DNA of 62,014 nt, from positions 98,669,776 to 98,731,789 of the forward strand of contig NC_068981.1 in NCBI RefSeq assembly GCF_001194135.2, written 5' to 3'. The notes below the pieces were generated by a model. That model was not told the DNA's origin. It worked only from the letters and a program-made list of their open reading frames with translations, and ran no database searches. The stretch comes from Octopus bimaculoides (Eukaryota). This document shows, in pieces, positions 9,794 through 49,720 of the stretch (positions within the stretch are counted from its first letter, which is position 1; each line of letters begins with the position of its first letter). Position numbers and translations under genes: made by a program.

Positions 9794-11748
9794 AGCAAGT
9801 CTTTATATTTTGATTTGTTTTCAGTAATTCCAAATTGAAATCTCTTTGAACATTGTTTTCTGTTTGCCTTTCTAAAGATTATTTGAAGCATCTTAGAATA
9901 CTGTAATTATTTTTATAGCTGTTTTTAAGCCTTGAGATGTGATTAGACAATATTTCTGCTTGAATCCACATTAATTTTGCAGTACATAATCAAATGTCAT
10001 ATTTATAGCAGTTAGTGCCTAAATCTTAAATAATGTTTTTATACGTTAGATTTTCATGAACAGTAAGAAGTTTGAATTGTTATAAGTATTTTAAAACTTT
10101 ATACATATGACTTTAACTACTGTGGATGTATCGAAGTTTAAACTCAAGCTCTTGTTTTTTAAATCCCAAAATGTTAATTATCTTTTATTGCTTTATTTGT
10201 AAACCAAAAAGACACTTTTATATCTTATTCTATGAAATTTCTGGTTATTTTCAATGGAAAGTTTTCAAAGTTCTGTTTACTATTTTTTAATCAGGAAGTG
10301 TCAATGTATAGCTTAATGGCCATTTTAGTACTTAATTTGATTTCAGTTATCCTTTGTGTAGAAAGTTATTTCTTCATAACATTTTTTTCTTTATGTGGTT
10401 TAAGAGTTGTTGCTAAGTCTTTGGTTTTGTCTTTATAAATCAATTTCTTGCCTGTTTAAAGCATACTGAGAAGAATTTTCATATCTGATGTGGTTTAGTA
10501 TTCATGTGAATCAGTGACTGTGGTTAAGGTACTGGGCTTTGAGCCCAGAATGTTCTGTTGCTTAGACCTCATTGCATTTGCTTCTGTAAACCTAGCTGAA
10601 AATATGTACCATGTCCACTTCATAGTTGGATATTAACGTATTCAGTCGGTGCCAATATTTTAATTCGTAGAAACATCTGTTAGCATGGTAAAAGGTTTTC
10701 TATTGAATTTGAAGGAAAACAACAGCATGAACATGAATTAGATTTTATAAAAATAGAACGTGTAGTATTAACTATTATAAAGTGTTTTTAAAGGTTTGTT
10801 TTCTTTTATGTCAGTTATCTAAATTAAAACTCATTACTAAGTAGAAATTTAATCATTCACCACTCTCTATTTAATCTTTATACTTTTCTTTCTCCTTACT
10901 CTCAAATTTTTGATATTACTAAAAGCATAACAACTATATGTTTGTTCAATTTTCTATTGTGCTGTTTGAAAATTTGGTTTGAAGTAGAAATTTCTATGTA
11001 ATAAAATTCTTAAATAAGTTAATTAGGGATGCTGATAGTTTGAAAATGTAACACCAACTTTTTCATGTTTCTTAATAAAAAAAAAATTATTTTGCAAGTT
11101 TATGAATTATATTTAAACTGATTTCAATGTTTCTAAGATATGTATGATTGTTACTATTATGTATTCCACTCAATATATATTCAGAAGTATTATTTCTTTG
11201 AAGTTTCACATGGATGAAGATGCACAAATTATCTATTTTATGGTTTCTTGATGAAAATAGTTCAGCCGCATGTGCAAACTTGTTTATCTACATCAGGTTA
11301 AATTGGATCGTTATCAATGAAGAAGTCTCATTTTTTTTTTATTATTCACTGAAACTCTAATATATATTTATATATACATATATATATATATACATGTATG
11401 TATATATATATATATACATATGTGTATATAAATACATAATGTAAATCTCAAAAAATTTTGCATTCCAGTTTCTGTTATTTGCACATGTTGATATAAATGC
11501 ATGCAAACACTATTTTGTTAAACTAGTTATTGAGATTAAGATGAGCCATGCCAAATCAGTTTGATCTTAGTGATTTGTGATATTTGCCTTCTTACAGAAG
11601 TCTTACCCTATTAGCTATAGTCACTGTTAATTCCACTAACTATTAATGTAACTCTTAATTCATTGATGATCATGTAGCACCATGCTTATTTACTGATTAT
11701 CATTGTTATTCAGGGTTGTACTTCGGCATCTGACGACCAGGGTACTCT

Positions 11749-11847
11749 ATGCTTGAAGTGCATAGCGAAGTATGCTAGTAAGACTGATGACTTTTTGTCT
11801 CTGCTCTCAGACTTACTGGCGTGCGTATCGCCATTCACTGTTGTCAT
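11749..11847 (+). ncRNA. pri-miRNA-like hairpin HP1 (candidate Drosha substrate)
   Basis: Manual pairing of arms 11757-11787 and 11807-11839, including 13 contiguous pairs (11770-11782 with 11812-11824, G:U allowed) and a 19-nt apical loop. Confidence 0.5.
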
Positions 11848-11878
11848 CTGGTCCGGCAGAGGCGAGGGCTGTCACACA

Positions 11879-11964
11879 TTGCACTCTCCTCTTGACCATG
11901 GTCGAGCCGGGTAGATTCTGTTATAACCCACCCCTTGACTTTCTGGTCATGTAGGAGGTCGCAA
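11879..11964 (+). ncRNA. pri-miRNA-like hairpin HP2 (candidate Drosha substrate)
   Basis: Manual pairing gives about 29 bp: TTGC/GCAA, TCTCCT/AGGAGG, TGACCA/TGGTCA, GGTCGAG/CTTGACT, GGGT/ACCC. Confidence 0.42.
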
Positions 11965-14900
11965 CACCTCAATTCTTGGACCTGGTGGCATCTCTGACTA
12001 CATACTTGTTGTGGCCTTGTGTTTCTGTCTACTGCTAACATTTACTGCTGAGTGTCTGCCTTGGTTTAGTGAACATCTACATTGTGTATGATCATCAGAA
12101 TCAGCATTTTTCATGGAATACTTCAAGTATTTTGATGCACTGCTTGTGATCCTGTACTGGAGTAAGTATAAATGCTTTGTGAGTCAATGTTTAGTTAGAG
12201 CAGATGTCATGGGGTCTATCATGTTTATATAATGTTAACAGATTTAATATTCTCGACCCCACTGTATCTGTAAAAATCTTTGTAAACATTTTTATTTATT
12301 TTTACTTCAGTTTTTTTTTTTTCATTTTAAGTCATTTTAATGTTTTATTTTAATTTCTTCAAAATTTAGTTTGAGTTGTCATTGAATATTCTTAGAGAAA
12401 ATTAATTTTATAATGAGTAAAACATGAAAGCATTTTTATATACTTCTCTTCCAAATTATGAGAAAAATCATAGAGATAGTAGCTGAACTGGTTAGTTTAG
12501 TGAATTGTGTTACCTAATGAAGTTAACTAAAATTTACATACTAACTTAATGTCAATGTTTACGATCAGTATTTGAAAGGATTAATTTTCAGGGATTCTAA
12601 TCTCAGATTAACCATTTTGATTCCAAGCTGCCTCTGGTTCACTAATATGAACCTTCCATCATAATTTTATTTAAGAAAATTTCCTAAGTTAAGTTTTAAG
12701 TATCTTAATAATGAAATTAGATATTTTACTAAACTCATTCAAAATTTTTCTATTTGTTTTCAAAATTAATTGAAACACATGAACAGTGTATTTCATTAGA
12801 AATATTATAACAAAACATTGGAATGATCTATTTGAGAACAGGAGATCTGATTGCAACAAAATGATTGACGTCTCTTTTGAGGAAAAAAAGTAATTTTGGT
12901 AATTTGAGGTGTTCTAAACATGTCAGAATTGTTTAATTGCTACTAAAGACAAACCAACACTGGCTAATACAATGAAATAGCTATTAAGTATTAAGAATTA
13001 GTATAATCAAAAGTGCATGAGCATACACGCATACTCATTTAAATATTTGTCTTTTGAAATAGTCAAGACTTTATAAAAACTTTACCTTTTCTTATAAAAT
13101 CATAGGTAAAGCTAATCATTATATATAAATGCTTCTACATTGCATTATAAAGTTAAAGCAAGTTCAAGAAATATTGATATTGTTTATGTATTAGGATTAC
13201 ATAAGACTACTTTATATTCTGTCCTGGTAAACTGTGGGGTTTTGCTTAGATCATTTTCATCCTCAAAGTTGTTTTATAATTCTTTCCAAGAATTTGTAAA
13301 GTAGGAATTACAGTTGTTAGATCAGGAATGCATAAAAAGTCTTTCATTTTTATTTTTGCAGAAGTTCAGGAGTTATTTTAGCAAATTGACATAATTGGTT
13401 CACCACCAAAATTGGGTGATTTTTCAGTCAAACCAAGTGAGTTTGAATTTACACACTTTTAATATAGTCAATTTATTTAATTAGTTAATAATTTTTGAAA
13501 ACCCTCCTACTTTAAGATGTTCTTGCATAATGCAAAAAGGTTAAAAAGCACAAAAAAAAAAAATTTACAAAACTTTGCATTGGTATTTTTCAGAAAATGT
13601 AGTAGTTCCACTGTAAAATTTTTGCTTAACTTAAAATCTTGTCGAGCTACTCTTAAATTGGTTAATACATGTGTTAGAGACTGAACAAAAGCCTTGTAGC
13701 TGTTACAATTCTACATTTCTGCATATATTTTATATTTATGTCTTTTGGATTGAAATCGTTATTTGATCACATCCCACAAAATCAGAATGTTCTTACTCAT
13801 CTGAGGATGATCAAAGAATATTCTGATTTAACTATAAAATGAAAGATGAGAACGTTTAAATCATTAGTAGTCATGTGGTTTGTGAATTTTAGTGGACAGT
13901 TTGTCTAGAAAATTTTTTAGAATAAAATCAAAGCTAGAATCTTCTAAAAAGTAGTGTCAGTGATAACATCTCACATTTTTATAGAAGAATGATGGGCATA
14001 TGTTTTGGGTTAAGGTTAGCTATTGATTCTGCTATTGATCTATAAACTAAAGCTGTGAGCAAAAGATAAGTCATTGGTGAATGATGTAAGGACATAGTGG
14101 ATTAAAATGCAAGCAATAATGATGAAATATTTGCAGAATGGAGGTACTTTTTTTTTTGTAGAAGAAAAACAATTGTTTATTTGCCTTCTTGGGATAAGAA
14201 TATGTAACAAGTATTAATATCAAAAATCTGTAGTAGCTGTAAAGTTGTAATGAAATAATGTTAATGCATTAGTTTGAAATAATATGGTTAAAGAATCAAA
14301 TTACTGGTGGATTTTTGAGTTGGAATTTTAAAATGAAAATACAAAAGTTTGAGCAATATCTATGTAGGAGTTTATGTAAATGTTTAACATGTCGTATTTA
14401 AATACTTTGCTGGTGTTAAAGTTCATTTACTCTGTTTTCAGATGTTTTCTGCTAGTAGATATATTTCAAAATAACCAAATCCTGTTTTGGATATAAACTT
14501 TATTGGTATAACTTTATAAATACATCGACACTCCAAATTGTTTTATGTTTCCCTTGTCAATACTGCACCATACATTCTAGACCACAAATGTTTTACTGAC
14601 CCTACAGAAACAGCACATATAGCTACTCAGTATCTATATTATTGTATACCCTTTAATCTTTGTTGTCTCTTGTTCACAAGATATTATTTGGCAGGAGTAT
14701 ATTACCTTCAAATAGCTAAAAAAAAAAAATGTTATTTCTTTGGTAATTTGTATAACAAATTATTGGGTAAAATGAATATGCCTTAAGTAAAATTTGTTTA
14801 TTTGCAGAACTTGGTGAGCTAACATGTAATCAGATTGTTCTCCTCAGCTCTTTCAGTGATGTTAGCGAATAGATATTGAGTGAGATATGCTTGTATACAA

Positions 14901-17987: not shown

Positions 17988-19928
17988 TTTTAAGGGTTAA
18001 ATTATGTTGCTAGAATTGATTTTGTTAGATTACAAGAGAAGGGTTTTTTTGATACCTCAACTTTTGTGATCAACATACGGTAGTAGTCATTATAGTGAAA
18101 CATCACTGTCACACTGCTGTTTGAAATAGTCTGTTCATGCAACTTCGATTATTTTATTTTTTTTTTAGATAATAACATTTAGTAACATCATTTATTATTT
18201 CTGTACAATATTTGATCCACATTTTTATCAAAATTGCTGGTAGATTGTCAAAGTAACATTTTGCTATAGTAAGTGCTTTTCAATTTCATCATCTTTCATC
18301 TACTTGGATGAGTCTTCTTGAGGACTCATCCAATGAGTCTTCTTACAGCCAAATTTTCTTCCTGATGCCAGCCTTTTAGCTTACTTGTTTACAAATAAGG
18401 TACTTGATTCACATCTTCCCATGTTGAATCAGTGTTACTGGACTCTTAGTCCTGTGAGAGATAAATGTCATCTCTGTTGAAGTAGTGTCAATGCAAAGAT
18501 ACAGGTGGACAAATGCATGTATGCAGGCACACACACGCAATATATGTGACAGGTTTCCATATAGTTTGTCTGTCAAATTTCACTCACAAGGTTTTGGTCA
18601 ACCTGAACTCATGTGGTTGCGAAGCAATCTTCTAGGACCACAGAGTCATACCTGCATCTATTAATAGAGTTGAGAAAGCTGATTTATAGAAAAAAATTAC
18701 CCTAGTATTTGAGTTTAGCTATGGAGGGGACTGTTTTAATTTTTTATTTGGTGAATCAAGTTTACACAATCTCAACACCACACAATATCTAGGTATGCAG
18801 TTGGCTATAAGTTTTACCATTGTCTACTAGGGAAAAAAGGGCCTATAAACTTTATGAGTAAATGTTTACTCTATCCTCTGTCATGTTAATCATGGCACTG
18901 TAATTGAAGAATAGAAGTTTTTCTTCAATTTACAAACAAAATCATCTTAAGCATTACTCATTGGTTCATTGTTAATGTAGGGTTGTGATTAAAAAGGTAA
19001 AATCAGTACGTAAGCTAAAATTCCTTCAGTTTATTTTATTTAAGCATGGAGAAAGCTCTTATCTCACTGATCGAATTTAAGAAGTTTGTACTGTTTAACA
19101 TCTGTTTTTCATGCCTTAATCAGAAGAAAATTGAGGAAGAACTTTAATGGCTGGATGCTTTTCCTGTTGCCAACCTTTTATTCAAGAGGCATTTGAAAAC
19201 AGGGCTAGTGGACAATTTGTGGACAGAAAATGTCACTAGTTGTAACCCAACCAGAAATGATGTCACTGGTTGTTGCTGAGCCACAAATGGTGACATCACA
19301 AGTTATAACTCAGCATAGTTTTGTAAACGTTCATACACACACACACATGACAAGCTTCTTTCAGTTTCCATTTACCAAATTCCCTCACAAGGCATTGCTT
19401 GGCTTGCGGTTATAGTAGAATAAATACACTTGCTCAAGGTGTCATGTGGATTTTGCAATTGATGTGCAGTTTTGTTATTTACTTTCCAAAAAGGCAATGA
19501 TACTCAAAGATATATTGCTGTCATTTGGATTGGTGAAAGTCTTGAATATTGTGTAGATTTTACAGAATAATATATTTTCACTCTTTGATATGAAGTAGAT
19601 GCAATTTAAAGGTAGCTGAATGTTCTGGAAATTTAGTGGAAAACTGGGAAGTATATTAACTTTGAGGTTAGAGTATATTTGTTTAACTATTTGCTTTTGT
19701 AATATTCAGTAAGGTAATAGTATTTTTTAAGACTTATACCTGGTATTTTGGAGGAGCTATAGCTTGTTAGGTTGAAAATTGGTAATAAGTACCATCACTG
19801 TTGACTTCATTTCACAAACTAAATTTTGCTGTTATTACCCCCTTGCATTGCGGTTTCTACTTTTCCACATTCAATTTTACAGCATTTGAGGTGCTTCTAA
19901 TCCTACAGTGCTACTCTTTAATTTTTAG

Positions 19929-20274
19929 GCAGAAATTTCTCTAAACCGTTTTCTTCCTGTGGACCAGTAACATATGAACTCAGAGGAAAAGAAAAGCCAA
20001 TTAAGATATTTGCGAAATGATACCAACATTGCATGTAGCTTTCTCCTAGTTACCAGGACAAAGTGTGGAATAATAATTGCGGCTACTTTTAATAGTTGCC
20101 ATTTGTTAAAACCCCAGAGACTGGTGGCTTGGTTACATTTAACAAATGCCAAGCAATGGCTTCTTAGGTTTTAACAGTACTTTACAACTGCAGAACTGAA
20201 AGTATAATAGACTGCGAGTCACCTGCTATGAAGTCTCCCTATTCCAAAACTCCTGACCCTTGTTCCTGCTCAAG
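19929..20274 (+). other. Second candidate non-coding 5'UTR exon
   Basis: Acceptor ctttaatttttAG at 19927-19928 and consensus donor CAAG|GTAAGT at 20275. Unique sequence with an internal hairpin at 20096-20152. Confidence 0.35.
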
Positions 20275-21536
20275 GTAAGTATTGAGGTGGTCCTCAAGGA
20301 TGGATGGGTTGACTAACTGCTCCATCTTTCACAATATCTCTTTCTTACTCTGCTACTTATTAATTTCTTTCTTTTTGTCCGTATCTAACTAGTTGCTCCC
20401 TATTCCTTTTAAATGTATTCATGAAATAGGCAATGCTAATAGACTCATCACCTCAGATCTTGTTAGAATTGGAAAAGTAAGAAACCCCTTCCTTTCTCCT
20501 CAGTTTCAATATTTTTTCTTAACGGACCTTGACCTTCATCTTTACATTAAGGTAAAAACAAAGATATATAAGTACAGGATCACATGCAGCTTTATTGTTG
20601 TTGTTCTTGTTATACCTTTTTAAGGTTTGGCCTGTTTTTTTAGAATTACTTGATTTTAAAAACTAATGCTTCCTACATTTACTAGCATTTGCTGTTGTGT
20701 TTGTTTGTTTGTTTGTGTATGTGTGTGTATGTCATATATGTATATATGCATACGTACATAGATGATAGAGTTTACAATTTTTGTTAAATGAAGAGATGAG
20801 CAAAAAAGCCTTAAAGGTTCATTTTAGAAACCAATATTCATTTCTTTAAGAATTTTCTCAAATAAAGTCTTCAAAAGTGACTTAGGAAAAATATTCAAGG
20901 TAATCTCTCTCTTTCTTTCTCTCTCTCTTGTGCGTGTGTGTGTGCGTGGAAGTGGATTTGTGTGCACACACAAAACCATTCAATTTTTTTTATATATATC
21001 TTTTGATACACCTAATTCTCAAAAATACAAGAATTAAGCCTTTAAGTAGAAATATCAGATCCTGGTCGTGTTGAGTGACTTAACTTTCTCATTGCTTTGG
21101 AGTTTCCCATCATGTGTTCATCATTTATTGAATATTGGCTTCCATTGAATTCCAGTATTAATAATGTAAGATGTTGGTGTCATTTACTTAAAGAAGCCTG
21201 TTATTAGAAATGAAGTGTTAGTATGAAACTTGTTTTTCAAAACCTTTTTCATTTATTCATTTTTGTAAAAATGGTTTTTTGCTATTTATACAATAACTTT
21301 TAAGGCTGTCACATGAATTGCTGCTCAAAATTACAAATATCTACTGAATTTTTTATTTTGTCACCTAATTTTTAAAAACATTTGTATTTGTATTCAATAA
21401 AATTGTTTTTATTATCTTGATATAATTTTTTCTAAAAGAAATTTACAGTTTTATTTATTGTAATCAATCCTTCACATGCTTTCTGTAGGTAGTTTCATGT
21501 ATGGTAAGGCTAATGTAAGGGCATCTCTCTTTCCAG

Positions 21537-21713
21537 ATGAGGCTTAATTTCTTTGACTAGTTAGCAAGAGAGAGGTGGCTGAGCAGGTCTGTCCGGTTAA
21601 CAGTCCAGCTCTTTAGGAAAGAAGCTGATAGTCAAGCTTGGCTCTTTTATAGCACAGGTCCACAGCTCTGGCTTTAAGCTGTCTCATATCTACAACAAAA
21701 GTGATAAACTGCA
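21537..21713 (+). promoter_or_regulatory. 5'UTR portion of the ATG-bearing exon, with 7-codon uORF (MRLNFFD*, 21537-21560)
   Basis: Branch-point-like CTAAT at 21510-21514, pyrimidine tract tctctctttcc and AG at 21535-21536. The uORF is read directly from the sequence. Confidence 0.55.
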
Positions 21714-22272
21714 ATGGAAGTCCCTGGATCTCCATGCAATGCAGATGACGATGAAGCACAAAACAGCAATGATGAAAACTGTCAGAACCACATACTGCCA
21801 CCATCAACGCAAACGTCCAATCTAACTAATAATAAAAGGTTGTACTTTGACAGTGATGATGGTAGAAAAAACGACATAGACTATGGCTGCACTCCTGAAA
21901 AACGTCCACTAATTATGGCCCCTGTTTCTAGTGTTATTACCTGTGTTGAATCCTATTTAGACTGTGATCGAGAATCTAGACTTCCTAGTGGAGAACATTC
22001 TGCACAAACTTCTCATGTGTTTGAAATCATAGATGATATTGAACTGGATGATGATGGACTGGGTACTGATTTGAGTGCTCGGAGTTATATCTCAAACGGC
22101 CGGGAATCACTTGATCTTTCTAGCGACGATGATGATGAAGAATACTTGGATGATAACGAGGTCTATGCATGGTTGGAAGAGGGGGTTGACTCCCGCAAGT
22201 CTGGATCAGATGGAGAAACAAAAGATGACGGATCACAGGGGCCAATTGAAGTGCAAAAGATTGTTTTAAAAG
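21714..22272 (+). CDS. DGCR8: DGCR8/Pasha coding exon 1 (acidic, low-complexity N-terminus ending ...PIEVQKIVLK)
   Basis: ATG at 21714 (gcaATGG) follows an in-frame TAA at 21705-21707. Open frame to donor AG|GTAAAT at 22273 (phase 1), which splices in frame to the WW-domain exon. Confidence 0.9.
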
Positions 22273-22811
22273 GTAAATTATTATTTTTTTTTTTTTTTTT
22301 CACTTTGAAGTGCCTTTCATCCCCATAAGAAAATTTTATAATTTTTATTAATATTTCTTATCTATTATCTTGTAACTGCATTTCTTTTTAAATTACACAA
22401 CTTTCTTTCAACATCTGCTATGATATCAGATACATGAAAAACTTTGACAATTAATTTTATTCATCATTATTCCTAATTATGAGATCATTGAACTAATAAG
22501 GTTGCTTTTTATATGTATAAACCTATTTACTTTTTAAAGAACCTGCCCTGATTAAAAAAAAATTATGTAAAATTTCTTCTGATTAATACAGTCAGAATTT
22601 ACTAGCTACAACTATAGTTAATTATTTTAATCACAAATATCTTGTGAAATTAACATTAATATTATATTGTATTTAGAGCAAAATTTGGTTAATGATTTTA
22701 TACTGAATTTTAGAATCTATTCAGTTTATACCTGTATCAAACTGAACAGATTTATTTTAATAGTATTTAACAATACCTTTTCTTTTATATAAATAAAATA
22801 TATTGTTTCAG

Positions 22812-22954
22812 AGAGGGGCCATGATCCATTTGACATTCTACCAGAAGGCTGGATAATAGTAACTCATAATAGTGGCATGCCAGTTTATTTGCATAAAGAA
22901 TCAAGAGTATGTACTCTCTCCAAACCATACTTCTTGGGACCTGGTAGTGCCAGA
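22812..22954 (+). CDS. DGCR8: DGCR8/Pasha coding exon 2, WW motif ([48 protein letters not shown])
   Basis: Acceptor tgtttcAG, donor GTAAGT, 143 nt, phase 1 to 0. The translation closely matches the DGCR8 WW segment LPxGW...HNSGxPVYLHxESRV...SxPYFLGxGS. Confidence 0.97.
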
Positions 22955-23140
22955 GTAAGTATATATACATACATACATACATTTTATTTTTGCAGGCTTT
23001 TATGACTTATTACTTAATTTGGCTTCATACTATTCTGTGCTTTTTTTTTTTTTTTTTAATAAAAACAAAACTTTCCTGTGAGAGGCAAATAACATTACTT
23101 TTATATAAATTTTAATTTATTAATATTATACTCTTCGAAA

Positions 23141-23326
23141 GGTACTGAGCTGGCAGAATTGTAAGCGTGCCAAGCTAAATGCTTAGTGGCATTTTGTCTG
23201 TCTATACATTTCTGAGTTCAAATTCCTCTTGAGGTCAGTAAAATAGTACCAGTTGAGTACTGGGGTCGATGCATTTGGCTTACCCCCTGCCCTGAAGTTT
23301 CTAGCCTTGTGCCAAAATTTGAAACC
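23141..23326 (+). mobile_element. tRNA-derived SINE (second family)
   Basis: A-box-like gagctggcagaatt, B-box-like gagttcaaattcc, body agtaccagttgagtactggggtcgat. Confidence 0.65.
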
Positions 23327-24239
23327 AATACTGTACTCTTCTAAGTATGGTTAGTACAAGGGTTTTGACTTTTTATGTAGCAAGTTGTCTAAGACATAAG
23401 GCAATTACTGTTTACTTTTGGGGTTCTCTTGGAAAGAAAAGGTGTAGAGGAATTGTAAAGTGTTTTTATGTCTTTTATATGGATGAGGTGCTCTGGATAA
23501 AAAAAATCTAATGTAAGGTTTGATGCTAAAAAGATGTTATGCTGTATGGTAGGAATGGAATAATATTGGCTAGTATAATGACAAAAAAAAGTCATGAAGA
23601 GACAACACAGAATTGTTTTGACAGTGCTAAAATCTTAAGGCTTTCAAAATAGGTGTTAGTGTTGTAGCTATTCATGAGCAACTTTCAGCAAATAATTTTG
23701 TTTAGAGCACAAAGAGTTTGAACTCATGCACTTACTGCAATCTATCTATCTTTACATTTTTTGTGATAATTACACATTAAAAAAGATTACTTGTATATTT
23801 GAAAACATACTGCAGGACTTGGGTTTTGTTCTTGGTCAGAGTAGATGGTGCTCCTTGTTTCAATGTTTCCACCATGTCAGTGGGTTAGTATTTACAAATG
23901 ATGTTATTGTGAAATGATTCAATCATTTTGGTCACGTATCTGAATGGCTCCTATTTAATCCTTTAAAGTTTTATGATTTATTTAGCCTACCTTAGCAAAA
24001 CATATATCTACTTGTTTAAGCCCCTGGAACAGAAAAAAGGTTACATTGCTATTCAAGTGTTTAGAAACACATTAAATTATAAAAGCTTACACCGTTACAG
24101 TATGCAACAATATGCCAGATATATTGTTGCATACTGCAACAGCAAAAGCCTTGATACCCTATAGAAAATGAATCTTTAAAAGAAAACAGTACAATGATCC
24201 TAGAATAGTTGCTGGCAATCATTTCAGTTGATCGTTTAA

Positions 24240-24432: not shown

Positions 24433-24817
24433 TTAAATTTTACAATGAGATGTTTTAGTAAAAAGTCTAATGTTTGTCTGAATGAGTTAAATACTAGTCT
24501 GTGTCATGAGTTGTAATCTAGTCATAGACAATGTATTGTGCATTTGACTGGGTCTTAATTAATATTCAACTGAATTTAAATAAGTAACACAATTGCTCTC
24601 TATTTAAGTTACGAAAGAGCAACAGATTCAGCCATTTTTGTCACATATCTGAACTGCTTCTCTTTAATCTTATAGAATTTTATGATTTATTTAGCCTACC
24701 CTAAATTGTGTCTTAAATTAACACTTAATAGTGTCTAATATTATTGCTTATGATGTCTAAGTTGAGAATATTAACAATTAATTTCTTTACTTTTGTATTT
24801 TGTTTCTATTTTGCTAG

Positions 24818-24986
24818 AAACATGACATTCCTGTAAGTGCAATTCCTTGTCTTCATTATTCCCGTGAATTGGAGAAAGAATGTCAGCGTGGTACTCTTAA
24901 AGATCTTGAACCCTTAACTATCACTGAAGAACTTGAATGTACAGATAACCAAAATTCTGAACAAGCTGAAAATAATGATGAATCAG
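24818..24986 (+). CDS. DGCR8: DGCR8/Pasha coding exon 3, heme-binding region (KHDIPVSAIPCLHYSRELEKE...NDES)
   Basis: Acceptor ttttgctAG, donor GTGAGC, 169 nt, phase 0 to 1. Contains the KHD...IPCLHY motif of DGCR8. Confidence 0.96.
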
Positions 24987-27315: not shown

Positions 27316-29838
27316 CACTGAACTGCAAAAGAAATGCGAGACGTGTGTGACTGCGAAATATGTTTTAATTTCATTATGTCAGAGATAAATTTTGATAAAT
27401 CTGATAAAGTCAATTTCTTGGATGCACTTGACCACAGTCTATGGGTTGTTGTCATGTGTTCCGGTAGTGGGCGGATCCAGCACATCAAGATTGTAGGGCG
27501 TGACATGTTCAGTACTGTGTATGCCCTCCCTGAGTGTTCAAAACGGCCATACACTGTTGGTACATGGAGTGCATGAGTTGGTTCACAAAAGCCTTTGGTA
27601 CCTATGCCCACACCCTGAGGAAAGCTGCCTCCAGTTCCACACGAGTTGTTGGCCTTGAGACCACCTGGTTCAGCTGTCTCTGAATTTCATCCCACAGGTG
27701 TTGAATTGGCAGGCTGAGAGCCGGCCACAGCATGGTTCTGATGTGCTGATGTAGGAAGTCCATGGCGACCCTGGCCATGTGGGAAGGAGTATTGTCCTGC
27801 TGGAACACATGGCTTTGGTGATGTGTGAAGAAGGGCATGATGTGAGGTCTTAGGATCTGGTCAATGTAGCGCTGTGCTGTGATGCCACTCCCTCTGCCTG
27901 CACCAATATTTCGGAAAATATAGGATCCAGTTCTCTGATTCAGGCCTATAGCACCCAAAACCATGATGCTTTGGCCACCCCACCTGTCTCTCTCCATGAC
28001 AAATGCATCTGTAACGACCGTGCGACCAGGAGATGGTGACGAGGAATGGCTCCTTTAGCGCATCGCATGGTCGATACAAATAAAAAACGCGAAAAGAGGT
28101 TAAATGAGTATAAGTGCCAAAAAGGAAAAAAGAGAGATACAACCGGTAGAAGGTTTAAGAGAAGGTTTTATTGATATGTCAACTTGTGTGTGTGTGAGTG
28201 TGACATATAAACATAATAATAGACAGGCCATCATGCAAACAAAGTGTATGTGTATACAAACTTGGATGTATGTGTGTGAGAGAAATACAGAGCATAGAAA
28301 AGGACGTTAGAAGAAACTCCAGGCACAAGGATGGTAAATACCAGTTCGTATTGAAGGTACACAGTAGTTGAGGTGCTGTAAGAAGTTGTGGCTGCAAGGC
28401 AGAGCCGGGGAGACACATGTCGTGTAAGAAGTTGAGGCCTCAATGCTGCGGACGGTTACTTGGTACAGGAGTTCTTGCTCGTTGTACTCGCTGTTAACCA
28501 TGGTGAAGCATTTCACAAACAGCGTGGGGAAAAGCTATGCAAGTGCTGCTGGTGGTGTGTATGTAGAGAAGTTGATGTAGACGCTAAGAAGCTGGCGGTG
28601 GCGACAAAGGAGTTTGCAGTAAGCTGTTGAACGAAGTGATGGATCTCCATGAAGCTGTGTCGTGTTGTCGCTGGAACTGGCTGTGTGCTCTGTGGCCAGC
28701 GGCTAGACCTCAGAAGGTCTAAAGCCGACTTACAATCATATGCAGAAAAGCTAGCTATTTATAAGGTACTATCGGCTCAAACAGGGGTTCAGAAAAACTG
28801 TCCCACACGACCTTATTTGAAGGCTGCAATTGGTAGGGTTGCACCCTGGTGTGAAATAGAACAAGAGACAAAAATGCACCAATACCAACCAATCAGAGTG
28901 GTGGACACAACAGGGTCCAAAAGTGCGGCCGAAGGCTAGCTGTTAACCACTACGTCCGCACTCATGTATATATAACAGAGAGAGAGAGAAGTACACTACA
29001 CATCTCTGTATCGTTCACCCCTCTTACGCCACACCCGCACTCTGCCATTCGAGGTGGAAACGCAGTACCAGCTCTCGTCAGAGAAGACTATCAACCTCCA
29101 TTGCTGGTGCTGCCAATGTCAGTGCTGTGTAACCCACTGTAGTCGTGCCTGATGGTGGCAGGCAGTGAGGACAGGCCTTCAAACAGGATAATGGCAACAC
29201 AGGTTGTTGGCAGCCAGTCAACATCTTTCTGTGCTGTCGCTGATGTGTCGCTATCCAGTGGTAATGGTCTCACGAGCTGTCATGCTGATCAGTCTGAAGT
29301 GATCACAGAGGTGTTGCAGGTGGATGAAACAGTCCTGCCTGGGCGTGGTCACCCAGGGGCGCCCTCTGCGGGCAAAGTCTGCAGTGCTGTTGGTGTTGTT
29401 GTATCGCTGTTGCAGGCGATAGATGGTGCTAACATGGACATTGTAAGCTTTCACAACAACCAGGGCATGTTGTCTTGCTTGTAATTGGCCAATAGCTTGT
29501 TCTCTCTGCACTGCTGACAATCTGGTCATACCTGATGCATCCAAATTACGAATGCCAGGAACGTGGTTCAAGTTGATTTTTATACTCATAACCTCCATGA
29601 GATGCACATGCATTTTGGTTTTCATGACAATTGTTTGCAACTGCCACCCATGGCATTCAGTGCAGCTGCGTTTTGGTGTGTCATTTCAGGGAAAGTTGAA
29701 AGGTTACCTGCGATTTGGGTTTCAGTCATAAACCAGCATGTCTTGGAATATTTACGCTTAGATCCCCGAAATAAATTTTCAGAATTTACCATATAAAAAT
29801 GACATTTGAAAAAATCGCATTTCCTTTGCGATTCAGTG
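27316..29838 (-). mobile_element. Tc1-family DNA transposon, decayed transposase (29529 to 27509), interrupted by a solo LTR
   Basis: 24-bp TIRs match at 21/24 (cactgaactgcaaaagaaatgcga vs cactgaatcgcaaaggaaatgcga), left flank TA. Motifs GRPxVTTPRQD, VFSDES, FQQDN, IQHLWD, GGHTQY*. Confidence 0.92.
28010..29000. mobile_element. 991-bp solo LTR (probably Ty3/Gypsy) nested in the Tc1 transposase
   Basis: TGTA...TACA ends and 4-bp TSD CATC (28006-28009 and 29001-29004). Removing it restores the Tc1 frame ...RKRGERYRDAFVMERD. Confidence 0.85.
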
Positions 29839-33757: not shown

Positions 33758-34307
33758 CATCATCATCATCATCATCATCGTTGTTTAACGTCCGCTTTCC
33801 ATGCTAGCATGGGTTGGACGATTTGACTGAGGACTGGTGAAACCAGATGGCTACACCAGTCTCCAATCCGATTTGGCAGAGTTTCTACAGCTGGATGCCC
33901 TTCCTAACGCCAACCACTCAGAGAGTGTAGTGGGTGCTTTTACGTGTCACCCACACGAAGGCCAGTCAGGCGGTACTGGCAACGGCCACGCTCAAAATGG
34001 TGTATTTTGTGTGCCACCCGCACAAGAGCCAGTCCAGGGGCACTGGCAATGATCTCGCTTGAAAGTCCTTAGACATGCCGTGGGCACAAGTGCCAGAAAG
34101 GCGATGCTGGGCACAGGTGCCATCACAATTTCGCTTTCGCTTGCCCCAATAAGTCTTCGCAAGCTGAGTTTCATGTCCAATGAAGGAGACGACGTTGCCA
34201 TGGGTGCCACTCGTCGAATTTAATTTGATTTCGATTTCACTTGTCTCAACAGGTCTTCGCAAGTGGAGTTTAGTGTCCAATTTAACTCGATTTCGATTTC
34301 ACTTGCC
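33758..34307 (-). mobile_element. RTE LINE 3'UTR fragment with (GAT)n tail
   Basis: High identity to 36354-37270, 42328-42642 and 45191-45485; internal tandem subrepeats (gatttcgatttcacttg). Confidence 0.85.
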
Positions 34308-41488: not shown

Positions 41489-42066
41489 ATAAAGGAGAGA
41501 TACATTTTGGATAATATACTCCTTGATACAATATGCTTAACAAAAAGATGGGACGTTTACGGCAAGAAGACCTTTGATTTTAATATTTACTTGACCAAAG
41601 AAACAACTAACAACACTATATCATTTGTTTCAATGAAATTGAGCAAATTTTAAAAAAAACTGACAGAATTTTATGTTTATTACTTAATTATGATACCAAA
41701 ACAAATAGATTTATAAATCTTATGTCAAACTTTTATTGAAAACTTTCAACATGTCTGTATCCCTGCATACTTCAAATCTCTCCTTAGTGTTGTGAAACAC
41801 ATTCAGTTAGCATTTCAGGAGTTAGCTCCTGCACTGCTAACTGAATGTGTTCTTTAAGCTCAGCTAAATGGTCGCTTCATCTTAGAAATGGAGGTAAAGA
41901 AAATGATTGCTGCCAAAAGTGAGTTTAAAAAAATTATACATTAATCTCTATTTTTGTAAGCTGTCTTAATTTTTGTATGCAGTGTAAATGAACCAAATAG
42001 AAGCACATGTACATACTGCTAATTTAACAGTAAATGCCACAATAATTATTATAGATAAATTTCTTA

Positions 42067-42327: not shown

Positions 42328-43832
42328 CATCATCATCATCATCATCATCATCGTATAACGTCCGCTTTCCATGCTAGCATGGGTTGGACGATTTGACTGA
42401 GGACTGGTGCAACCGGATGGCTACACCAGGCTCCAATCTAATTTGGCAGAGTTTCTACAGCTGGATGCCCTTCCTAACGCCAACCACTCAGAGAGTGTAG
42501 TGGGTGCTTTTACGTGTCACCCGCTCGAAAACGGCCACACTCGAAATGGTGTCTTTTATGTGCCACCCACACAAGAGCCAGTCCAGGGGCACTGGCAAAG
42601 ATCTCGCTCGAAAACCCTACAAGGCCAGTCAGGCGGTACTGGNNNNNNNNNNNNNNNNNNNNNNNNNNNNNNNNNNNNNNNNNNNNNNNNNNNNNNNNNN
42701 NNNNNNNNNNNNNNNNNNNNNNNNNNNNNNNNNNNNNNNNNNNNNNNNNNNNNNNNNNNNNNNNNNNNNNNNNNNNNNNNNNNNNNNNNNNNNNNNNNNN
42801 NNNNNNNNNNNNNNNNNNNNNNNNNNNNNNNNNNNNNNNNNNNNNNNNNNNNNNNNNNNNNNNNNNNNNNNNNNNNNNNNNNNNNNNNNNNNNNNNNNNN
42901 NNNNNNNNNNNNNNNNNNNNNNNNNNNNNNNNNNNNNNNNNNNNNNNNNNNNNNNNNNNNNNNNNNNNNNNNNNNNNNNNNNNNNNNNNNNNNNNNNNNN
43001 NNNNNNNNNNNNNNNNNNNNNNNNNNNNNNNNNNNNNNNNNNNNNNNNNNNNNNNNNNNNNNNNNNNNNNNNNNNNNNNNNNNNNNNNNNNNNNNNNNNN
43101 NNNNNNNNNNNNNNNNNNNNNNNNNNNNNNNNNNNNNNNNNNNNNNNNNNNNNNNNNNNNNNNNNNNNNNNNNNNNNNNNNNNNNNNNNNNNNNNNNNNN
43201 NNNNNNNNNNNNNNNNNNNNNNNNNNNNNNNNNNNNNNNNNNNNNNNNNNNNNNNNNNNNNNNNNNNNNNNNNNNNNNNNNNNNNNNNNNNNNNNNNNNN
43301 NNNNNNNNNNNNNNNNNNNNNNNNNNNNNNNNNNNNNNNNNNNNNNNNNNNNNNNNNNNNNNNNNNNNNNNNNNNNNNNNNNNNNNNNNNNNNNNNNNNN
43401 NNNNNNNNNNNNNNNNNNNNNNNNNNNNNNNNNNNNNNNNNNNNNNNNNNNNNNNNNNNNCCCACTACTAACTTGGTCACCCAGATAGCGGAAGCTATCA
43501 ACTACCTCTAGTTTTTCTCCCTGGAATGAGATAGAAGTTGTTTCCTGTTTGTTTACAGTGTTTATTGCACCTGAACATCTGCCACATACAAAAACTAACT
43601 TTGTAGTTAATCTGCCTTTGATATTGCTGCACCTCTTATGTGTCCATAGCTTGCACTGGGTACATCTTATAGAGTTACTACCTACTCCTTTACTGCATAC
43701 TGAGCAGGGCCATCTACCTGAAGGGGTTTGTGTTTTATCTACCTTCCTACTTATTAGGATTTTGGTTTTTGCTAGGTTGACTCCGAGGCCCTTCGATTCT
43801 AGTCCTTGCTTCCACACCTTAAACTTCTCCTC
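42328..43832 (-). mobile_element. Young 5'-truncated RTE LINE spanning an assembly gap; ORF2 piece with PHD-type finger
   Basis: Open frame EEKFKVWKQGLESKGLGVNLAKTK...CSVC...CTQC...H..C...CGRC...LEVVDSFRYLG; 3' end identical in kind to other copies. Confidence 0.9.
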
Positions 43833-44237
43833 GGCCATAAAGATGGAAACTTGCCTATGCGTAACGTTGTTCGCATTAGGATATAATTCAAATATAATAG
43901 AAATAAGATAATCTTGGTGTTATCACATTGGAATTAAAAGTGAAACAATATTATAGTCTTATCACATTAGAATTAAAAATGAAAGAATAAAAGTGAAATA
44001 ATATTATATCATTACAATATAGATCTTATTTTCTCACGTTTGACATGTAATACTGAACCAGTCTAAAAGATTGCTCCAGGCTTGCATTAGGCAAGAAGTT
44101 GAAAATTTTTTTGGCCCATGACACTCCATGGAACCCAAGTAATGTATGTGTAAAATTTGAATGAAATCTGTTGGGTACTTCTCGAGTTTTAGGGATTCAC
44201 ACAGACAGACAGACACACATTCTCAGTTTTATATATA

Positions 44238-47789: not shown

Positions 47790-49720
47790 CAGCATTTTAT
47801 TAATTAGTTTGACAGGTGGAAGGAGCTGTGTTAATGTCCAGAGAATTGGTGGGGTTAATGTTTTTGAATATTAACCACTGGGTACAGAAAGATATGGTAG
47901 GGAGGGAATTCCAGAGGAATGATATTTTGGGAGAAAATGTCTGGACAAACTGCTTAGCATGGGACCTGAGGGGAAAAGAGTGGACACAATATGGGTGATG
48001 AAAACAGGAGAGATGAATGAGTTGGGAGGACCTCAGTAAAAGTGACACAGATCCAGCTAGTTTCAAGTAGTAATGGTTGTAAAGGCAGAATGAAGGGAAA
48101 GCACATCTGTTAGCCTAGAGCAGGGGTCACCAAACTACAGCCCACAGGCCGGATCTGGCCTGCCGCTGCATTGTACCTTTTGTGTAAGTACCTGCAATGA
48201 GAGTTAATTCCTGCAGCGATCATGTTTTAACTTGCATTGTTGTGTTAAAACTGGTTTGAAGAGTGCCATATATAAAAGGGAATGACTTCAGTGAATTATG
48301 TCATATATTTTGCATATTTGACTGTTGAAAGAACTCACAAGAGAGAAGCATCTAATAGTTTCAAACTTTGATATTCATTCAAGTCCTATATAAGCGCCCT
48401 GTTTATACACTGCATTATTCATCAGTAAAGCACTCTGTTGGAAAAACTTAGATATTTCTTCTGTACTGAGACCTGTCATTTCTGTGGTGAATTTCATTCG
48501 GGGTCATGCAATTAATCACTGCCAGTTCCAGGCTTTTCTTGAAGAAATTGATTCTGAATTCTGTGATATGCCTTATAACACAGCAGTGAGATGGCTTAGC
48601 TGCTGTAAAGTCCTGTTTCGTTTTTATAAGCTCCAAAGAGAAATAGATATTCTCACCGAAAAGGATAGAGCTGATCTCCTTCTGTCAGATCCTACTTGGC
48701 TGTCAAAGTTGTCATTTTTGGTTGATATCACATCCCTCATGAATGAATTGAACTTGAAACTTCAAGAAAAGGATAACCTTATCTGTGATCTTTACAGAAT
48801 CATCAAGGATTTCAGAGAAAGCTATCATTGGAAGGAGGAAACTTCTTTCATTTTCAATGTTTCAAAGAGTTTTAAGCTGGAATTGCAGATGTCAACTTTG
48901 AGTTTCCAAAAGAAGATTATTTGTGACTTAAATAAGCATTTTTTGGAGAGATTTTCAAATCTCAACAAAATTGTGAGTGACATTCTGTTCCAGAATCTGT
49001 TTGATTATAACCTTGATGATATGCCAGTCAAACTACAGTTGAAGTTCATTAATTTGCAAGCAAATGACTTGTTGAAAGAGAAGCACAGAGAAGGAAAACT
49101 TGTTGAATTTTGTTGCTGCTTACTTGATAATGACCTTTCAGAGTTGAAGAAATTTGCCTCTAGTATGGCATCAATGTTTGGAACAACTTATGTATGTGAG
49201 CAAGTATTTTCAAAAATGAAGTATGTGAAGTGAGCACATCGAACAAGGTTGACTGATGAACATTTGAAAGCAATTCTCTTGGTTGGTTGCAACAATTCCA
49301 AAGCAAATGTTGATGATATCTTAAAAGCTAAATACCAGTTTCACAAATCACACTAATCTTTTTTGCTGCTTAGTTTGTGAGATTCGGATATGTGCACACT
49401 GGGTGTGATATAACTTATTGCTAATGTCACCTTTTTTGATAACCTTTTGGTAAATAGATATGTTGGTTGTTTTTATTTTTTGTGTATTTGTTGTATTGCA
49501 TTGAATGAGATGGTTAAGCGGCTCACGCGCATCACTCTCTCAGTTATCCAACCCACTGTGTTTGGTGACCTCTGGCCTAGAGGCTGGTGTGTTTTGCTGA
49601 GCAACTTCATGCTAATCAGTTCAGTTGCTTTTTTTCTTTTTTTTTTGTCATCATATCCAAGTTTAGGAGAAGAATTAAGTTGTACTGTTACAAAAAGGAT
49701 ATTACATTTTTGTGCCTCTT
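47790..49720 (-). mobile_element. Decayed CR1/L2/Jockey-group LINE 3' fragment, split by the hAT element
   Basis: Minus frames give ...QPL(A)NRCAFPSFCLYNHYY (PLxHRR-like) and HPYCVH...FSPKISFLWNSLP. The frame continues across the hAT insertion site. Confidence 0.6.
48121..49574 (+). mobile_element. hAT (Charlie/Buster/SPIN-GTF2IRD2-like) DNA transposon, internally deleted
   Basis: TIRs CAGGGGTCACCAAAC / CAGAGGTCACCAAAC (14/15) and perfect 8-bp TSD GCCTAGAG (48113-48120 and 49575-49582). Transposase C-terminal part 48484-49356 has VRWLS and MFGTTYVCEQVFSKMK motifs, with a stop at 49231-49233. Confidence 0.95.

Follow-up and report, generated by a model that had tools for sequence, protein, structure and literature searches.

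A conserved, hairpin-bearing probable leader exon upstream of octopus DGCR8/Pasha as a putative Microprocessor target

An island lying about 9.5 kb 5' of the DGCR8/Pasha start codon, collinear with the gene and on the same strand, was characterised in the window, the whole stretch of 62,014 nt of Octopus bimaculoides DNA that was analysed. Judged from its sequence, the island very probably serves to control the microRNA-processing machinery, with putative cutting by the Microprocessor, and is very probably an RNA-level cis-regulatory leader (5'UTR) exon of DGCR8, its inclusion in the transcript being presumed. Negative feedback by the Microprocessor, with predicted cleavage, is the most plausible mechanism for such an exon. 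The best explanation, to which we give a probability of about one half, is a structured DGCR8 leader exon that would be spliced into the mRNA to an extent or at a speed set by RNA duplexes, and would be cropped by Drosha-DGCR8.

The island and its donor have the following extent:
11714-12161, + strand: the island, a non-coding exon of 448 nt with 46.7% G+C
12162-12171, + strand: 5' splice site GTAAGTATAA, right behind which conservation with the comparison species stops

A preliminary description had taken the island to be bounded by splice sites, richer in G+C than its surroundings and free of repeats, and these claims hold. An AG at 11712-11713 precedes G11714 (acceptor boundary ttcag/G), and the island ends in CTGGA at 12161, followed by GTAAGT from 12162 (GGA/GTAAGT). 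Its 46.7% G+C compares with 25.0% and 25.5% in the flanking kilobases. It is single-copy in the window, where self-BLAST returned the self match, one 19-nt inverted match and nothing else, and where an island 20-mer occurred once with up to three mismatches allowed. No open reading frame crosses the island in any frame, and its indels against the orthologue (1, 4, 1 and 1 nt) are not multiples of three.

Conservation was assessed against the syntenic copy in one distant species (L003), giving two species in all. Lack of conservation had been named beforehand as a ground for discarding the idea; the island and L003:2724-3170 agree at 91.8% over 451 alignment columns, 30 of them mismatched and 7 gapped, with identical runs of up to 44 nt. 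The wider block (window 11647-12171 against L003:2657-3180, 90.9%) is the strongest of six colinear blocks, the remaining ones being an intronic hairpin (H4, 83%), a short intronic box, the ATG exon (70.7% nucleotide identity), the WW exon (82%) and the Rhed exon (82%). Neutral divergence was gauged on one of these:
22803-22954, + strand: WW-domain exon of DGCR8, the benchmark for neutral divergence

Here 48 of 49 amino acids are identical and third codon positions are 53% identical, and four-fold synonymous sites of DGCR8 agree between window and L003 at 7 of 23; neutral sites are therefore saturated. As read from this alignment, the conservation of the island is the decisive evidence and lifts it above chance, and its best explanation is very strong selection on the island's RNA rather than on its DNA. 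Conservation reaches 67 nt into the intron upstream of the acceptor, and loops and linkers are almost as conserved as stems, so that more than a generic Drosha substrate is needed to account for it.

Downstream of the island, the coding part of the gene begins with these features:
21494-21536, + strand: acceptor region of the ATG exon, with branch point CTAAT, polypyrimidine tract and acceptor
21537-22272, + strand: first coding exon of DGCR8, with the main ATG at 21714

The identity of the gene as DGCR8/Pasha, claimed earlier from the sequence, was borne out by a PDB match (E about 3e-26). The acceptor region of the ATG exon hardly differs among the window, L001, L003 and L004, and the exon opens with a conserved 7-codon uORF (21537-21560, MRLNFFD-stop), identical in four sequences. 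Since the ATG exon carries its own conserved acceptor, an upstream exon must exist, and the island has the sole conserved consensus donor detected 5' of the ATG exon in the window or L003; neither an upstream first exon nor a promoter was located. From the + strand splice signals, the ATG-exon acceptor and an exon-intron duplex set out below, we infer that the island is part of DGCR8 mRNA.

Within the island, three hairpins were delimited:
11757-11839, + strand: H1, a pri-miRNA-sized hairpin with arms of about 35 nt, about 30 bp and many G.U pairs
11843-11989, + strand: H2, a long imperfect hairpin with arms of about 65 nt, 3 nt 3' of H1
11993-12099, + strand: H3, a weak third hairpin

The whole island folds at -144.6 kcal/mol on the + strand (z -2.95, 1 of 100 shuffles equally good), and the - strand gives z -1.37. 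Two adjacent hairpins had been described, and both are present as H1 and H2. The core of H1 (11764-11832) reaches -28.4 kcal/mol (z -4.55, 0 of 200 shuffles as good) against -19.7 on the - strand; its extended form has z -3.17 in the window and -2.40 in L003, with arms of 35 nt and about 30 bp in both species. Its six differences from L003 leave the hairpin intact: three create a pair or are compatible with wobble pairing, two lie in the apical loop and one in an internal loop. Of the three in the core, two fall in the apical loop. The predicted 3' cut of H1 is followed, at about 17-19 nt, by a CNNC motif (CAUC, 11845-11848), and basal UG or apical UGUG motifs were not seen on reading the hairpin sequences. 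H2 is alike in architecture in both species; scored over 11841-11989 of the window it has z -2.27, and in L003 it reaches -3.51 (0 of 200 shuffles as good). Two of its ten differences break a pair. Comparison with shuffled controls, which the preliminary description had proposed, thus came out in favour of the single hairpins, H1 and H2 beating the shuffles in both species, but not of the exon as a whole, whose fold is weak in L003 (z -1.48) and gives a clear signal in the window only. H3 (z -1.94 in the window, -1.01 in L003, +0.85 on the - strand) carries a 4-nt deletion and pair-breaking changes in L003, and finds no support as a conserved structure.

Stability has to be read against the size of the region. 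In a 70-nt folding scan of both window strands, with energies adjusted for G+C, about 30 distinct loci fold at least as well as H1, among them microsatellites, TE-type inverted repeats and others, so that folding by itself is within chance for a 62-kb scan. Geometry also matters: H1 is of canonical size, but H2, roughly double the canonical length, begins 3 nt further on. The two hairpins therefore cannot both have the single-stranded flanks preferred by the Microprocessor, and the spacing is awkward for simultaneous recognition.

A further hairpin was found in the leader intron:
20103-20191, + strand: H4, a pri-miRNA-like hairpin with a conserved CAAC

H4 is paired over 20103-20177, with a lower stem of 11 bp below an upper one of about 22 nt, and its CNNC (CAAC, 20185-20188) is conserved and stands at +17. 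Six of its nine differences from L003 fall in the terminal loop, two in an internal loop, and one changes a stem U.G to U-A; the fold scores better in L003 (z -3.61) than in the window (z -1.91). With arms better conserved than the loop and a core the size of a pre-miRNA (about 60 nt), H4 has the form expected of a microRNA hairpin, and mollusc pre-miRNAs are under 80 nt (MirGeneDB 3.0). On the predicted folds, the clearest canonical pri-miRNA-like hairpin of the leader is H4, outside the island. This divides the original reading of the island as a Microprocessor cassette: that it is exon-like, non-coding, non-repetitive, structured and upstream of DGCR8 stands, and the hairpin closest to a canonical substrate lies elsewhere.

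These dimensions could also mean that H1, H2 and/or H4 are trans-acting cephalopod microRNA genes, their conservation coming from mature miRNAs and the island serving as a host exon, either shared with DGCR8 or belonging to a separate non-coding gene. The conserved arms and diverged loop of H4, its core within the mollusc range, the same pattern in H1 and the many lineage-specific miRNAs of coleoids (PMC9699675) agree with this. Nevertheless we consider it improbable, as the entire 448-nt exon is conserved, with linkers, splice sites and a long-range box, beyond any 22-nt arms; as a search of Rfam 15 at E values up to 10 gave no family, either within 11714-12161 or at H4; and as the arm sequences were not found in the supplements of the octopus miRNA paper other than its miRNA sequence file, nor by full-text searches. 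Mammalian DGCR8 hairpins also give small RNAs, so that a microRNA host would be compatible with feedback.

Both splice sites of the island lie in predicted RNA duplexes, formed by these elements:
11649-11719, + strand: H0, a pre-mRNA hairpin across the 3' splice site
12140-12158, + strand: exon-end box CTGCTTGTGATCCTGTACT, 3 nt 5' of the donor and complementary to 20571-20589
20571-20589, + strand: intronic box AGTACAGGATCACATGCAG, complementary to the exon end

In H0, UAACUCU (11649-11655) is the pairing partner of the acceptor AG (11712-11713) and of the bases that open the exon, and because H0 spans the acceptor, conservation sets in 67 nt 5' of it. Its z is -3.04 in the window, -1.30 in L003 and +0.07 on the - strand. 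A compensatory change affects pair 11652/11715, where the C-G of the window is replaced by U-A in L003; at 11653/11714 the window has U.G and L003 has C-G. An alignment for compensatory changes, suggested earlier and carried out with L003, thus yielded one in H0 and no double one across the exon's minimum-free-energy structure, where 22 differences fall in paired columns and seven are wobble-compatible; two species at very high identity give little power for covariation. At the other end, the exon-end box and the intronic box form an inverted match with 18 of 19 positions complementary (-32.3 kcal/mol in the window, -35.7 in L003). Among 932 intron tiles the intronic box is the best partner of the exon end (-32.7 against -27.7 kcal/mol for the runner-up). 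It recurs identically at L003:7909-7928, surrounded by otherwise unalignable intron, at 8.4 kb from the exon end in the window and 4.7 kb in L003, and lies about 950 nt before the ATG-exon acceptor. This conserved complementarity argues for a single + strand RNA that includes the island and extends to 20.6 kb or beyond, and the two duplexes together suggest that the mechanism involves, at least in part, splicing gated by structure.

The same duplexes would also suit a leader exon that works without Drosha cleavage. H0 and the pairing of exon end and box would then control inclusion, and the included exon, with the uORF at 21537-21560, would lower translation or recruit dsRNA-binding proteins (ADAR, Staufen); as a variant, the exon-intron duplex could be a classical editing-site complementary sequence. 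Conserved duplexes holding both splice sites, conservation running into the upstream intron as in regulated exons, a uORF identical in four sequences, and loops and linkers conserved like stems all suit it, as do the 18 + strand transitions, where 14 A<->G and 4 C<->U changes give the bias expected at A-to-I edited dsRNA, just nominally significant (binomial p about 0.03). The pri-miRNA dimensions and correctly spaced CNNC motifs of H1 and H4, as well as the location in a gene of the Microprocessor itself, would be left unexplained, and we regard this account as rather unlikely.

A DNA-level element, that is, an enhancer or promoter of DGCR8 or a neighbour in which hairpins and splice-like edges are incidental, was considered as well, since non-coding ultraconserved stretches close to regulatory genes often turn out to be enhancers. 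Four observations would be unexpected in protein-binding DNA and make such an element very improbable: conservation breaks off precisely at a consensus donor, G.U pairs make the structures specific to the + strand, a compensatory change keeps an RNA pair, and the complementary box is conserved at a distance of 8.4 kb.

Cropping of a DGCR8 leader has precedents. The mammalian DGCR8 hairpins overlap mir-3618 and mir-1306. In mammals, Drosha cleaves stem-loops at the 5' end of the Dgcr8 mRNA, reported in many species (PMC3814725); for the autoregulatory hairpins and for the Drosophila pasha 5'UTR target, this review points to Han et al. 2009 and Kadener et al. 2009, respectively. The octopus island shares with these systems the same gene, pri-miRNA-sized hairpins upstream of or at the coding start, two adjacent hairpins, interspecies conservation and, presumably, a complex acting on its own mRNA. 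Unlike their hairpins, which lie next to or within coding sequence, it is a separate exon 9.5 kb from the ATG, ultraconserved throughout and beyond the stems; both its splice sites lie in conserved duplexes, one of them a long-range exon-intron pairing, its leader intron adds the canonical-looking H4, and its cleavage is putative. The claim that its sequence resembles no known hairpin agrees with the Rfam search, so that the island is at most an analogue of the vertebrate and fly hairpins, or diverged beyond recognition.

Ultraconserved alternative ('poison') exons exist in RNA-binding-protein genes, for example those of SR proteins. The near-invariant non-coding octopus exon with its conserved flanking intron, in the gene of an RNA-binding regulator, has the same character and is probably autoregulatory, in line with auto-feedback of RNA-binding proteins as a general principle (PMC6884704). 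It differs in lying upstream of the start codon, which makes the usual route through a premature stop and NMD impossible, and its alternative inclusion is putative. Long-range complementary boxes in introns and exons also regulate splicing, and ADAR uses editing-site complementary sequences. Like these, the exon end (12140-12158) pairs over 19 nt and kilobases with a conserved complement (20571-20589) in an otherwise unconserved intron, but without mutually exclusive exons or a known editing site.

In an unrelated clade of invertebrates (L010-L012), the spliced DGCR8 transcripts have a conserved hairpin in the 5'UTR. It measures about 35 bp, scores z about -3 in each sequence, is nearly invariant, has indels in the loop only, and shows five compensatory pairs in the predicted consensus structure. 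It resembles the octopus island in being + strand-specific and in a DGCR8 leader, and differs in lying 225-350 nt from the ATG in spliced RNA; no sequence similarity between the two was detectable. A prior report of such a DGCR8 element in cephalopods was not found in the searchable literature.

In the feedback preferred here, H0 would occlude the acceptor of the hairpin exon, and the frequency or speed with which this exon is spliced in would depend on the two splice-site duplexes. When abundant, Drosha-DGCR8 would crop H1/H2 in the leader, together with H4 in the pre-mRNA, parting the cap from the coding region, and DGCR8 output would fall. More tentatively, and with considerable doubt, coleoids may have independently evolved a multi-part device in the DGCR8 5' pre-mRNA through which the cell would monitor Microprocessor activity during transcription and either splice the transcript productively or have it destroyed; its parts would be an ultraconserved hairpin exon, RNA-duplex-gated splice sites (one with an 8-kb pairing) and an intronic pri-miRNA-like hairpin. 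If this is true, the device and the analogous hairpin of L010-L012 would mean that Microprocessor self-cleavage was invented or re-invented repeatedly in animals, which bears on whether such autoregulation is ancestral to bilaterians or convergent.

The dosage of DGCR8 sets the output of the entire microRNA pathway. Coleoid cephalopods have undergone a large microRNA expansion tied to the nervous system (PMC9699675). A 448-nt exon that is 92% identical despite saturated synonymous sites would, if so, mean that control of the DGCR8 level is unusually strongly selected in these animals, and it would provide a concrete RNA element for this control, made up of hairpins, two splice-site duplexes and a long-range pairing.

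The open reading frame from 21714, together with the exons downstream, was identified as DGCR8/Pasha: the WW and Rhed exons matched the human DGCR8 structures 6V5B and 6LXD (E ~3e-26) and database proteins named 'microprocessor complex subunit DGCR8', and in spliced transcripts of other animals 22803-22949 was joined directly to 24812-24858, followed by the dsRBD exons at ~55.5 kb. The window is A+T-rich draft eukaryotic DNA in which N gaps, microsatellites and transposon fragments are frequent. ORFs in the large DGCR8 intron at 27602-27997 (-), 42510-43838 (-) and 48484-49233 (+) look, from their translations only, like transposon remnants (mariner/Tc1-like transposase, LINE ORF2 tail and hAT-like), and repeated blocks were seen at 33821/42391/45256 and 26491/8391.

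Homologues were searched for with the first-exon peptide as query, which retrieved a close relative (L001/L002), a 124-kb ENA contig of a distant species (L003) and a relative of the latter (L004-L009). The close relative was ~90% identical to the window across 2.5 kb of DNA (20702-23166). A third search for DGCR8 homologues returned fragments only, and the contigs of cephalopod-like DGCR8 matches, e.g. P0015, were too short to extend to the leader. Introns were unalignable between the window and L003, and six colinear blocks were left.

Blocks colinear between the window and L003 (window coordinates)
11647-12171, + strand: non-coding exon (the island) and flanks, 90.9% identity over 528 nt
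20103-20191, + strand: H4 hairpin, 83% identity
20571-20599, + strand: intronic box, 29-nt block common to both
From 21497, + strand: ATG exon, 70.7% identity
22806-22962, + strand: WW exon, 82% identity
24798-24879, + strand: Rhed exon, 82% identity

Neutral sites are saturated, since only 7/23 four-fold sites were identical; in the WW exon 48/49 residues were the same, yet third codon positions were 53% identical. Against this one distant species the island exon nevertheless retained 91.8% identity (451 columns with 30 mismatches and 7 gap columns; identical runs of up to 44 nt), so that its constraint is about as strong as that on WW-domain non-synonymous sites. Conservation started 67 nt upstream of the island acceptor and ended a few bases past the donor GTAAGTATAA. 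The indels measured 1, 4, 1 and 1 nt, which confirmed the island as non-coding. Judged from these alignments, conservation rather than folding is the decisive evidence for the island, which we consider real and functional with high confidence.

The island (11714-12161, + strand) had been described beforehand as bounded by splice sites, richer in G+C and free of repeats, and all three properties were recovered. It is preceded by ...ttgttattcAG (AG at 11712-11713, edge AG/G) and ends in ...CTGGA/GTAAGT (donor GT at 12162-12163); its G+C content is 46.7% vs 25% in the flanks, and a search within the window found one copy. No reading frame was open through its whole length and the indels were not multiples of three, ruling it out as a coding exon or uORF; the ATG of its 60-aa ORF was gone in L003 (A>G at 11772). 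A minus-strand exon was likewise rejected, as that strand lacked the splice signals and folded more weakly. No further copies or transcripts of the island came from a chimeric six-frame ORF query (among the 8000 candidates listed), exact look-ups of its 65-aa and 60-aa ORFs gave no match, and a metagenome DNA scan gave only an irrelevant chance 20-mer within a bacterial gene (L013).

The ATG exon was found to start at 21537, within a near-invariant block (21494-21585), after a near-invariant branch point (CTAAT), a pyrimidine tract and AG. At its 5' end stands a 7-codon uORF, MRLNFFD* (ATGAGGCTTAATTTCTTTGACTAG, 21537-21560), identical in 4/4 sequences (the window, L001, L003 and L004). Because this exon has its own conserved acceptor, DGCR8 requires a non-coding exon further upstream; in the window and in L003, the island donor was the sole upstream donor found to be conserved and to match the consensus. 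The island is probably a leader exon of DGCR8, with good but indirect support.

Both ends of the island take part in predicted duplexes. In H0 (11649-11719; z -3.04 on the + strand, +0.07 on the - strand) the upstream flank pairs with the first exon bases and buries the acceptor AG; the C-G pair 11652/11715 of the window corresponds to U-A in L003, a full compensatory change, and pair 11653/11714 goes from U.G in the window to C-G in L003. The exon end at 12140-12158 (CTGCTTGTGATCCTGTACT) is an 18/19 reverse complement of the intronic box at 20571-20589, 8.4 kb downstream, which is identical in L003 (7909-7928) amid unalignable intron. The duplex has an energy of -32.3 kcal/mol (-35.7 in L003), and of 932 intron tiles the box paired best with the exon end. 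If functional, this pairing would require one + strand RNA containing the island and the intron to ~950 nt before the ATG exon. Constraint on the island acts on + strand RNA. A DNA enhancer is the lowest-ranked alternative and unlikely, as the strand-specific evidence speaks against it.

The whole island folded as + strand RNA at -144.6 kcal/mol (z -2.95, with 1/100 dinucleotide shuffles equally good), and at z -1.37 as - strand.

Hairpins predicted within the island
11764-11832, + strand: H1 core, z -4.55 in the window (0/200 shuffles) and -2.89 in L003; - strand -2.55
11757-11839, + strand: H1 extended, z -3.17 in the window and -2.40 in L003
11841-11989, + strand: H2, z -2.27 in the window and -3.51 in L003 (0/200 shuffles)
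11993-12099, + strand: H3, z -1.94 in the window and -1.01 in L003; - strand +0.85

The two adjacent long hairpins of the preliminary description thus correspond to H1 and H2, both with z below -2 in the window and L003. H1 contains many G.U pairs and is 9 kcal/mol weaker on the - strand; none of the six differences from L003 in its extended form breaks a pair, two lie in the apical loop, and another two add or reinforce pairs at the base. H2 kept its architecture, with 2/10 differences pair-breaking, and the structure of H3 was not maintained in L003. Over the whole-exon minimum free energy fold, 22 changes fell in paired and 15 in unpaired columns, paired columns making up 67% of the total, so that changes were not enriched in unpaired columns; no double compensatory pairs were found, in a covariation test of little power with two near-identical sequences. 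Folding by itself would not set the island apart within the window, where a 70-nt scan of both strands gave ~30 distinct loci matching or beating H1 in G+C-adjusted folding energy.

The two strongest window hairpins, at 24081-24150 (-) and 41786-41855 (-), reach -39 and -38 kcal/mol and look like MITE/TE-type inverted repeats. The first is a near-perfect ~24-bp stem in the DGCR8 intron between the WW and Rhed exons, outside every L003 block; the second, an ~18-bp near-perfect stem with a further 6-bp stem inside it, is outside the region covered by L003.

Of the pri-miRNA-like elements in the DGCR8 leader, H4, in the leader intron (20103-20177; conserved block at L003:7342-7431), comes closest to the canonical form, with an 11-bp lower stem, a ~22-nt upper stem and a 14-17-nt loop. 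Its 9 differences from L003 fall in the terminal loop (6), the internal loop (2) and the stem (1, U.G to U-A). The predicted cuts lie at about 20113/20114 and 20168/20169 in H4, and at about 11768-11770 and 11826 in H1. A CAAC is conserved in both species 17 nt downstream of the 3' cut predicted for H4, and H1 carries a CAUC at a similar spacing; a basal UG and an apical UGUG were seen in neither hairpin. Because AG- and GT-like signals flank H4, it could alternatively be a small exon. A true miRNA host, to which this pri-miRNA-like shape would lend itself, was ranked second among the rivals to Microprocessor feedback.

Rfam was scanned at gathering threshold over the whole window and permissively over 11000-13000 and 19900-21800. 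No family matched the island or H4 in these scans, only microsatellite look-alikes; sub-threshold matches to mir-297, mir-466 and mir-1277 at 11362-11444, 20697-20773 and elsewhere were spurious hits to (TA)n/(TG)n microsatellites and not miRNA genes. There is therefore no evidence of homology to the vertebrate or fly DGCR8 hairpins: the octopus island may work alike, but membership by descent is unsupported. Mammalian DGCR8 carries a hairpin beside the ATG, whereas none was found at 21480-21600 (z -0.15 in the window, +0.32 in L003).

Stem-loops at the 5' end of Dgcr8 mRNA are recognised and cut by Drosha, which destabilises the transcript, as reported for many cell types and species (PMC3814725). 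No paper was found linking cephalopod DGCR8 to leader hairpins or describing such an element in cephalopods; an octopus miRNA paper mentions DGCR8 (LOC106876173 / LOC115208771) solely as a target, through conserved sites in its 3'UTR (PMC9699675). The Microprocessor cassette proposed in the preliminary description is partly supported: the DGCR8 gene and the structured, conserved exon held, and no Rfam homology was found. H1 and H2 are spaced by only 3 nt, H2 is ~2x the canonical length, and the loops and linkers of the island are conserved nearly like its stems, a pattern suggestive of additional ligands or alternative folding. Such features count against a simple version of feedback, and a switch of splicing or translation based on structure and the uORF, without cleavage, is the most plausible rival. 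Transitions between the island and L003 on the + strand were 14 A<->G vs 4 C<->U (p ~0.03, our calculation), a bias that may reflect A-to-I editing of leader duplexes or wobble tolerance.

Microprocessor feedback through the leader hairpins is the leading candidate mechanism, at a probability of about one half, and the most economical one, because right-sized hairpins sit in the exceptionally conserved leader of DGCR8 itself. Spliced DGCR8 transcripts of an unrelated, distant, non-octopod invertebrate clade have a ~35-bp 5'UTR hairpin that is nearly invariant and + strand-specific (L010:1261-1390, L011:608-735, L012:864-988; z ~-3 in each, +0.89 on the - strand). Indels in it occur only in the loop, and its predicted consensus structure contains 5 compensatory pairs. 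Further upstream, columns 42-71 of alignment A4 hold a second conserved hairpin, which is shorter. These leaders share no sequence similarity with the octopus island; that they bear a hairpin of their own speaks for conserved hairpins as a recurrent feature of DGCR8 leaders. In the octopus, H0 and the duplex of exon end and box would gate splicing of the hairpin exon, as we infer, and Microprocessor would crop the leader hairpins of DGCR8 RNA, giving negative feedback.
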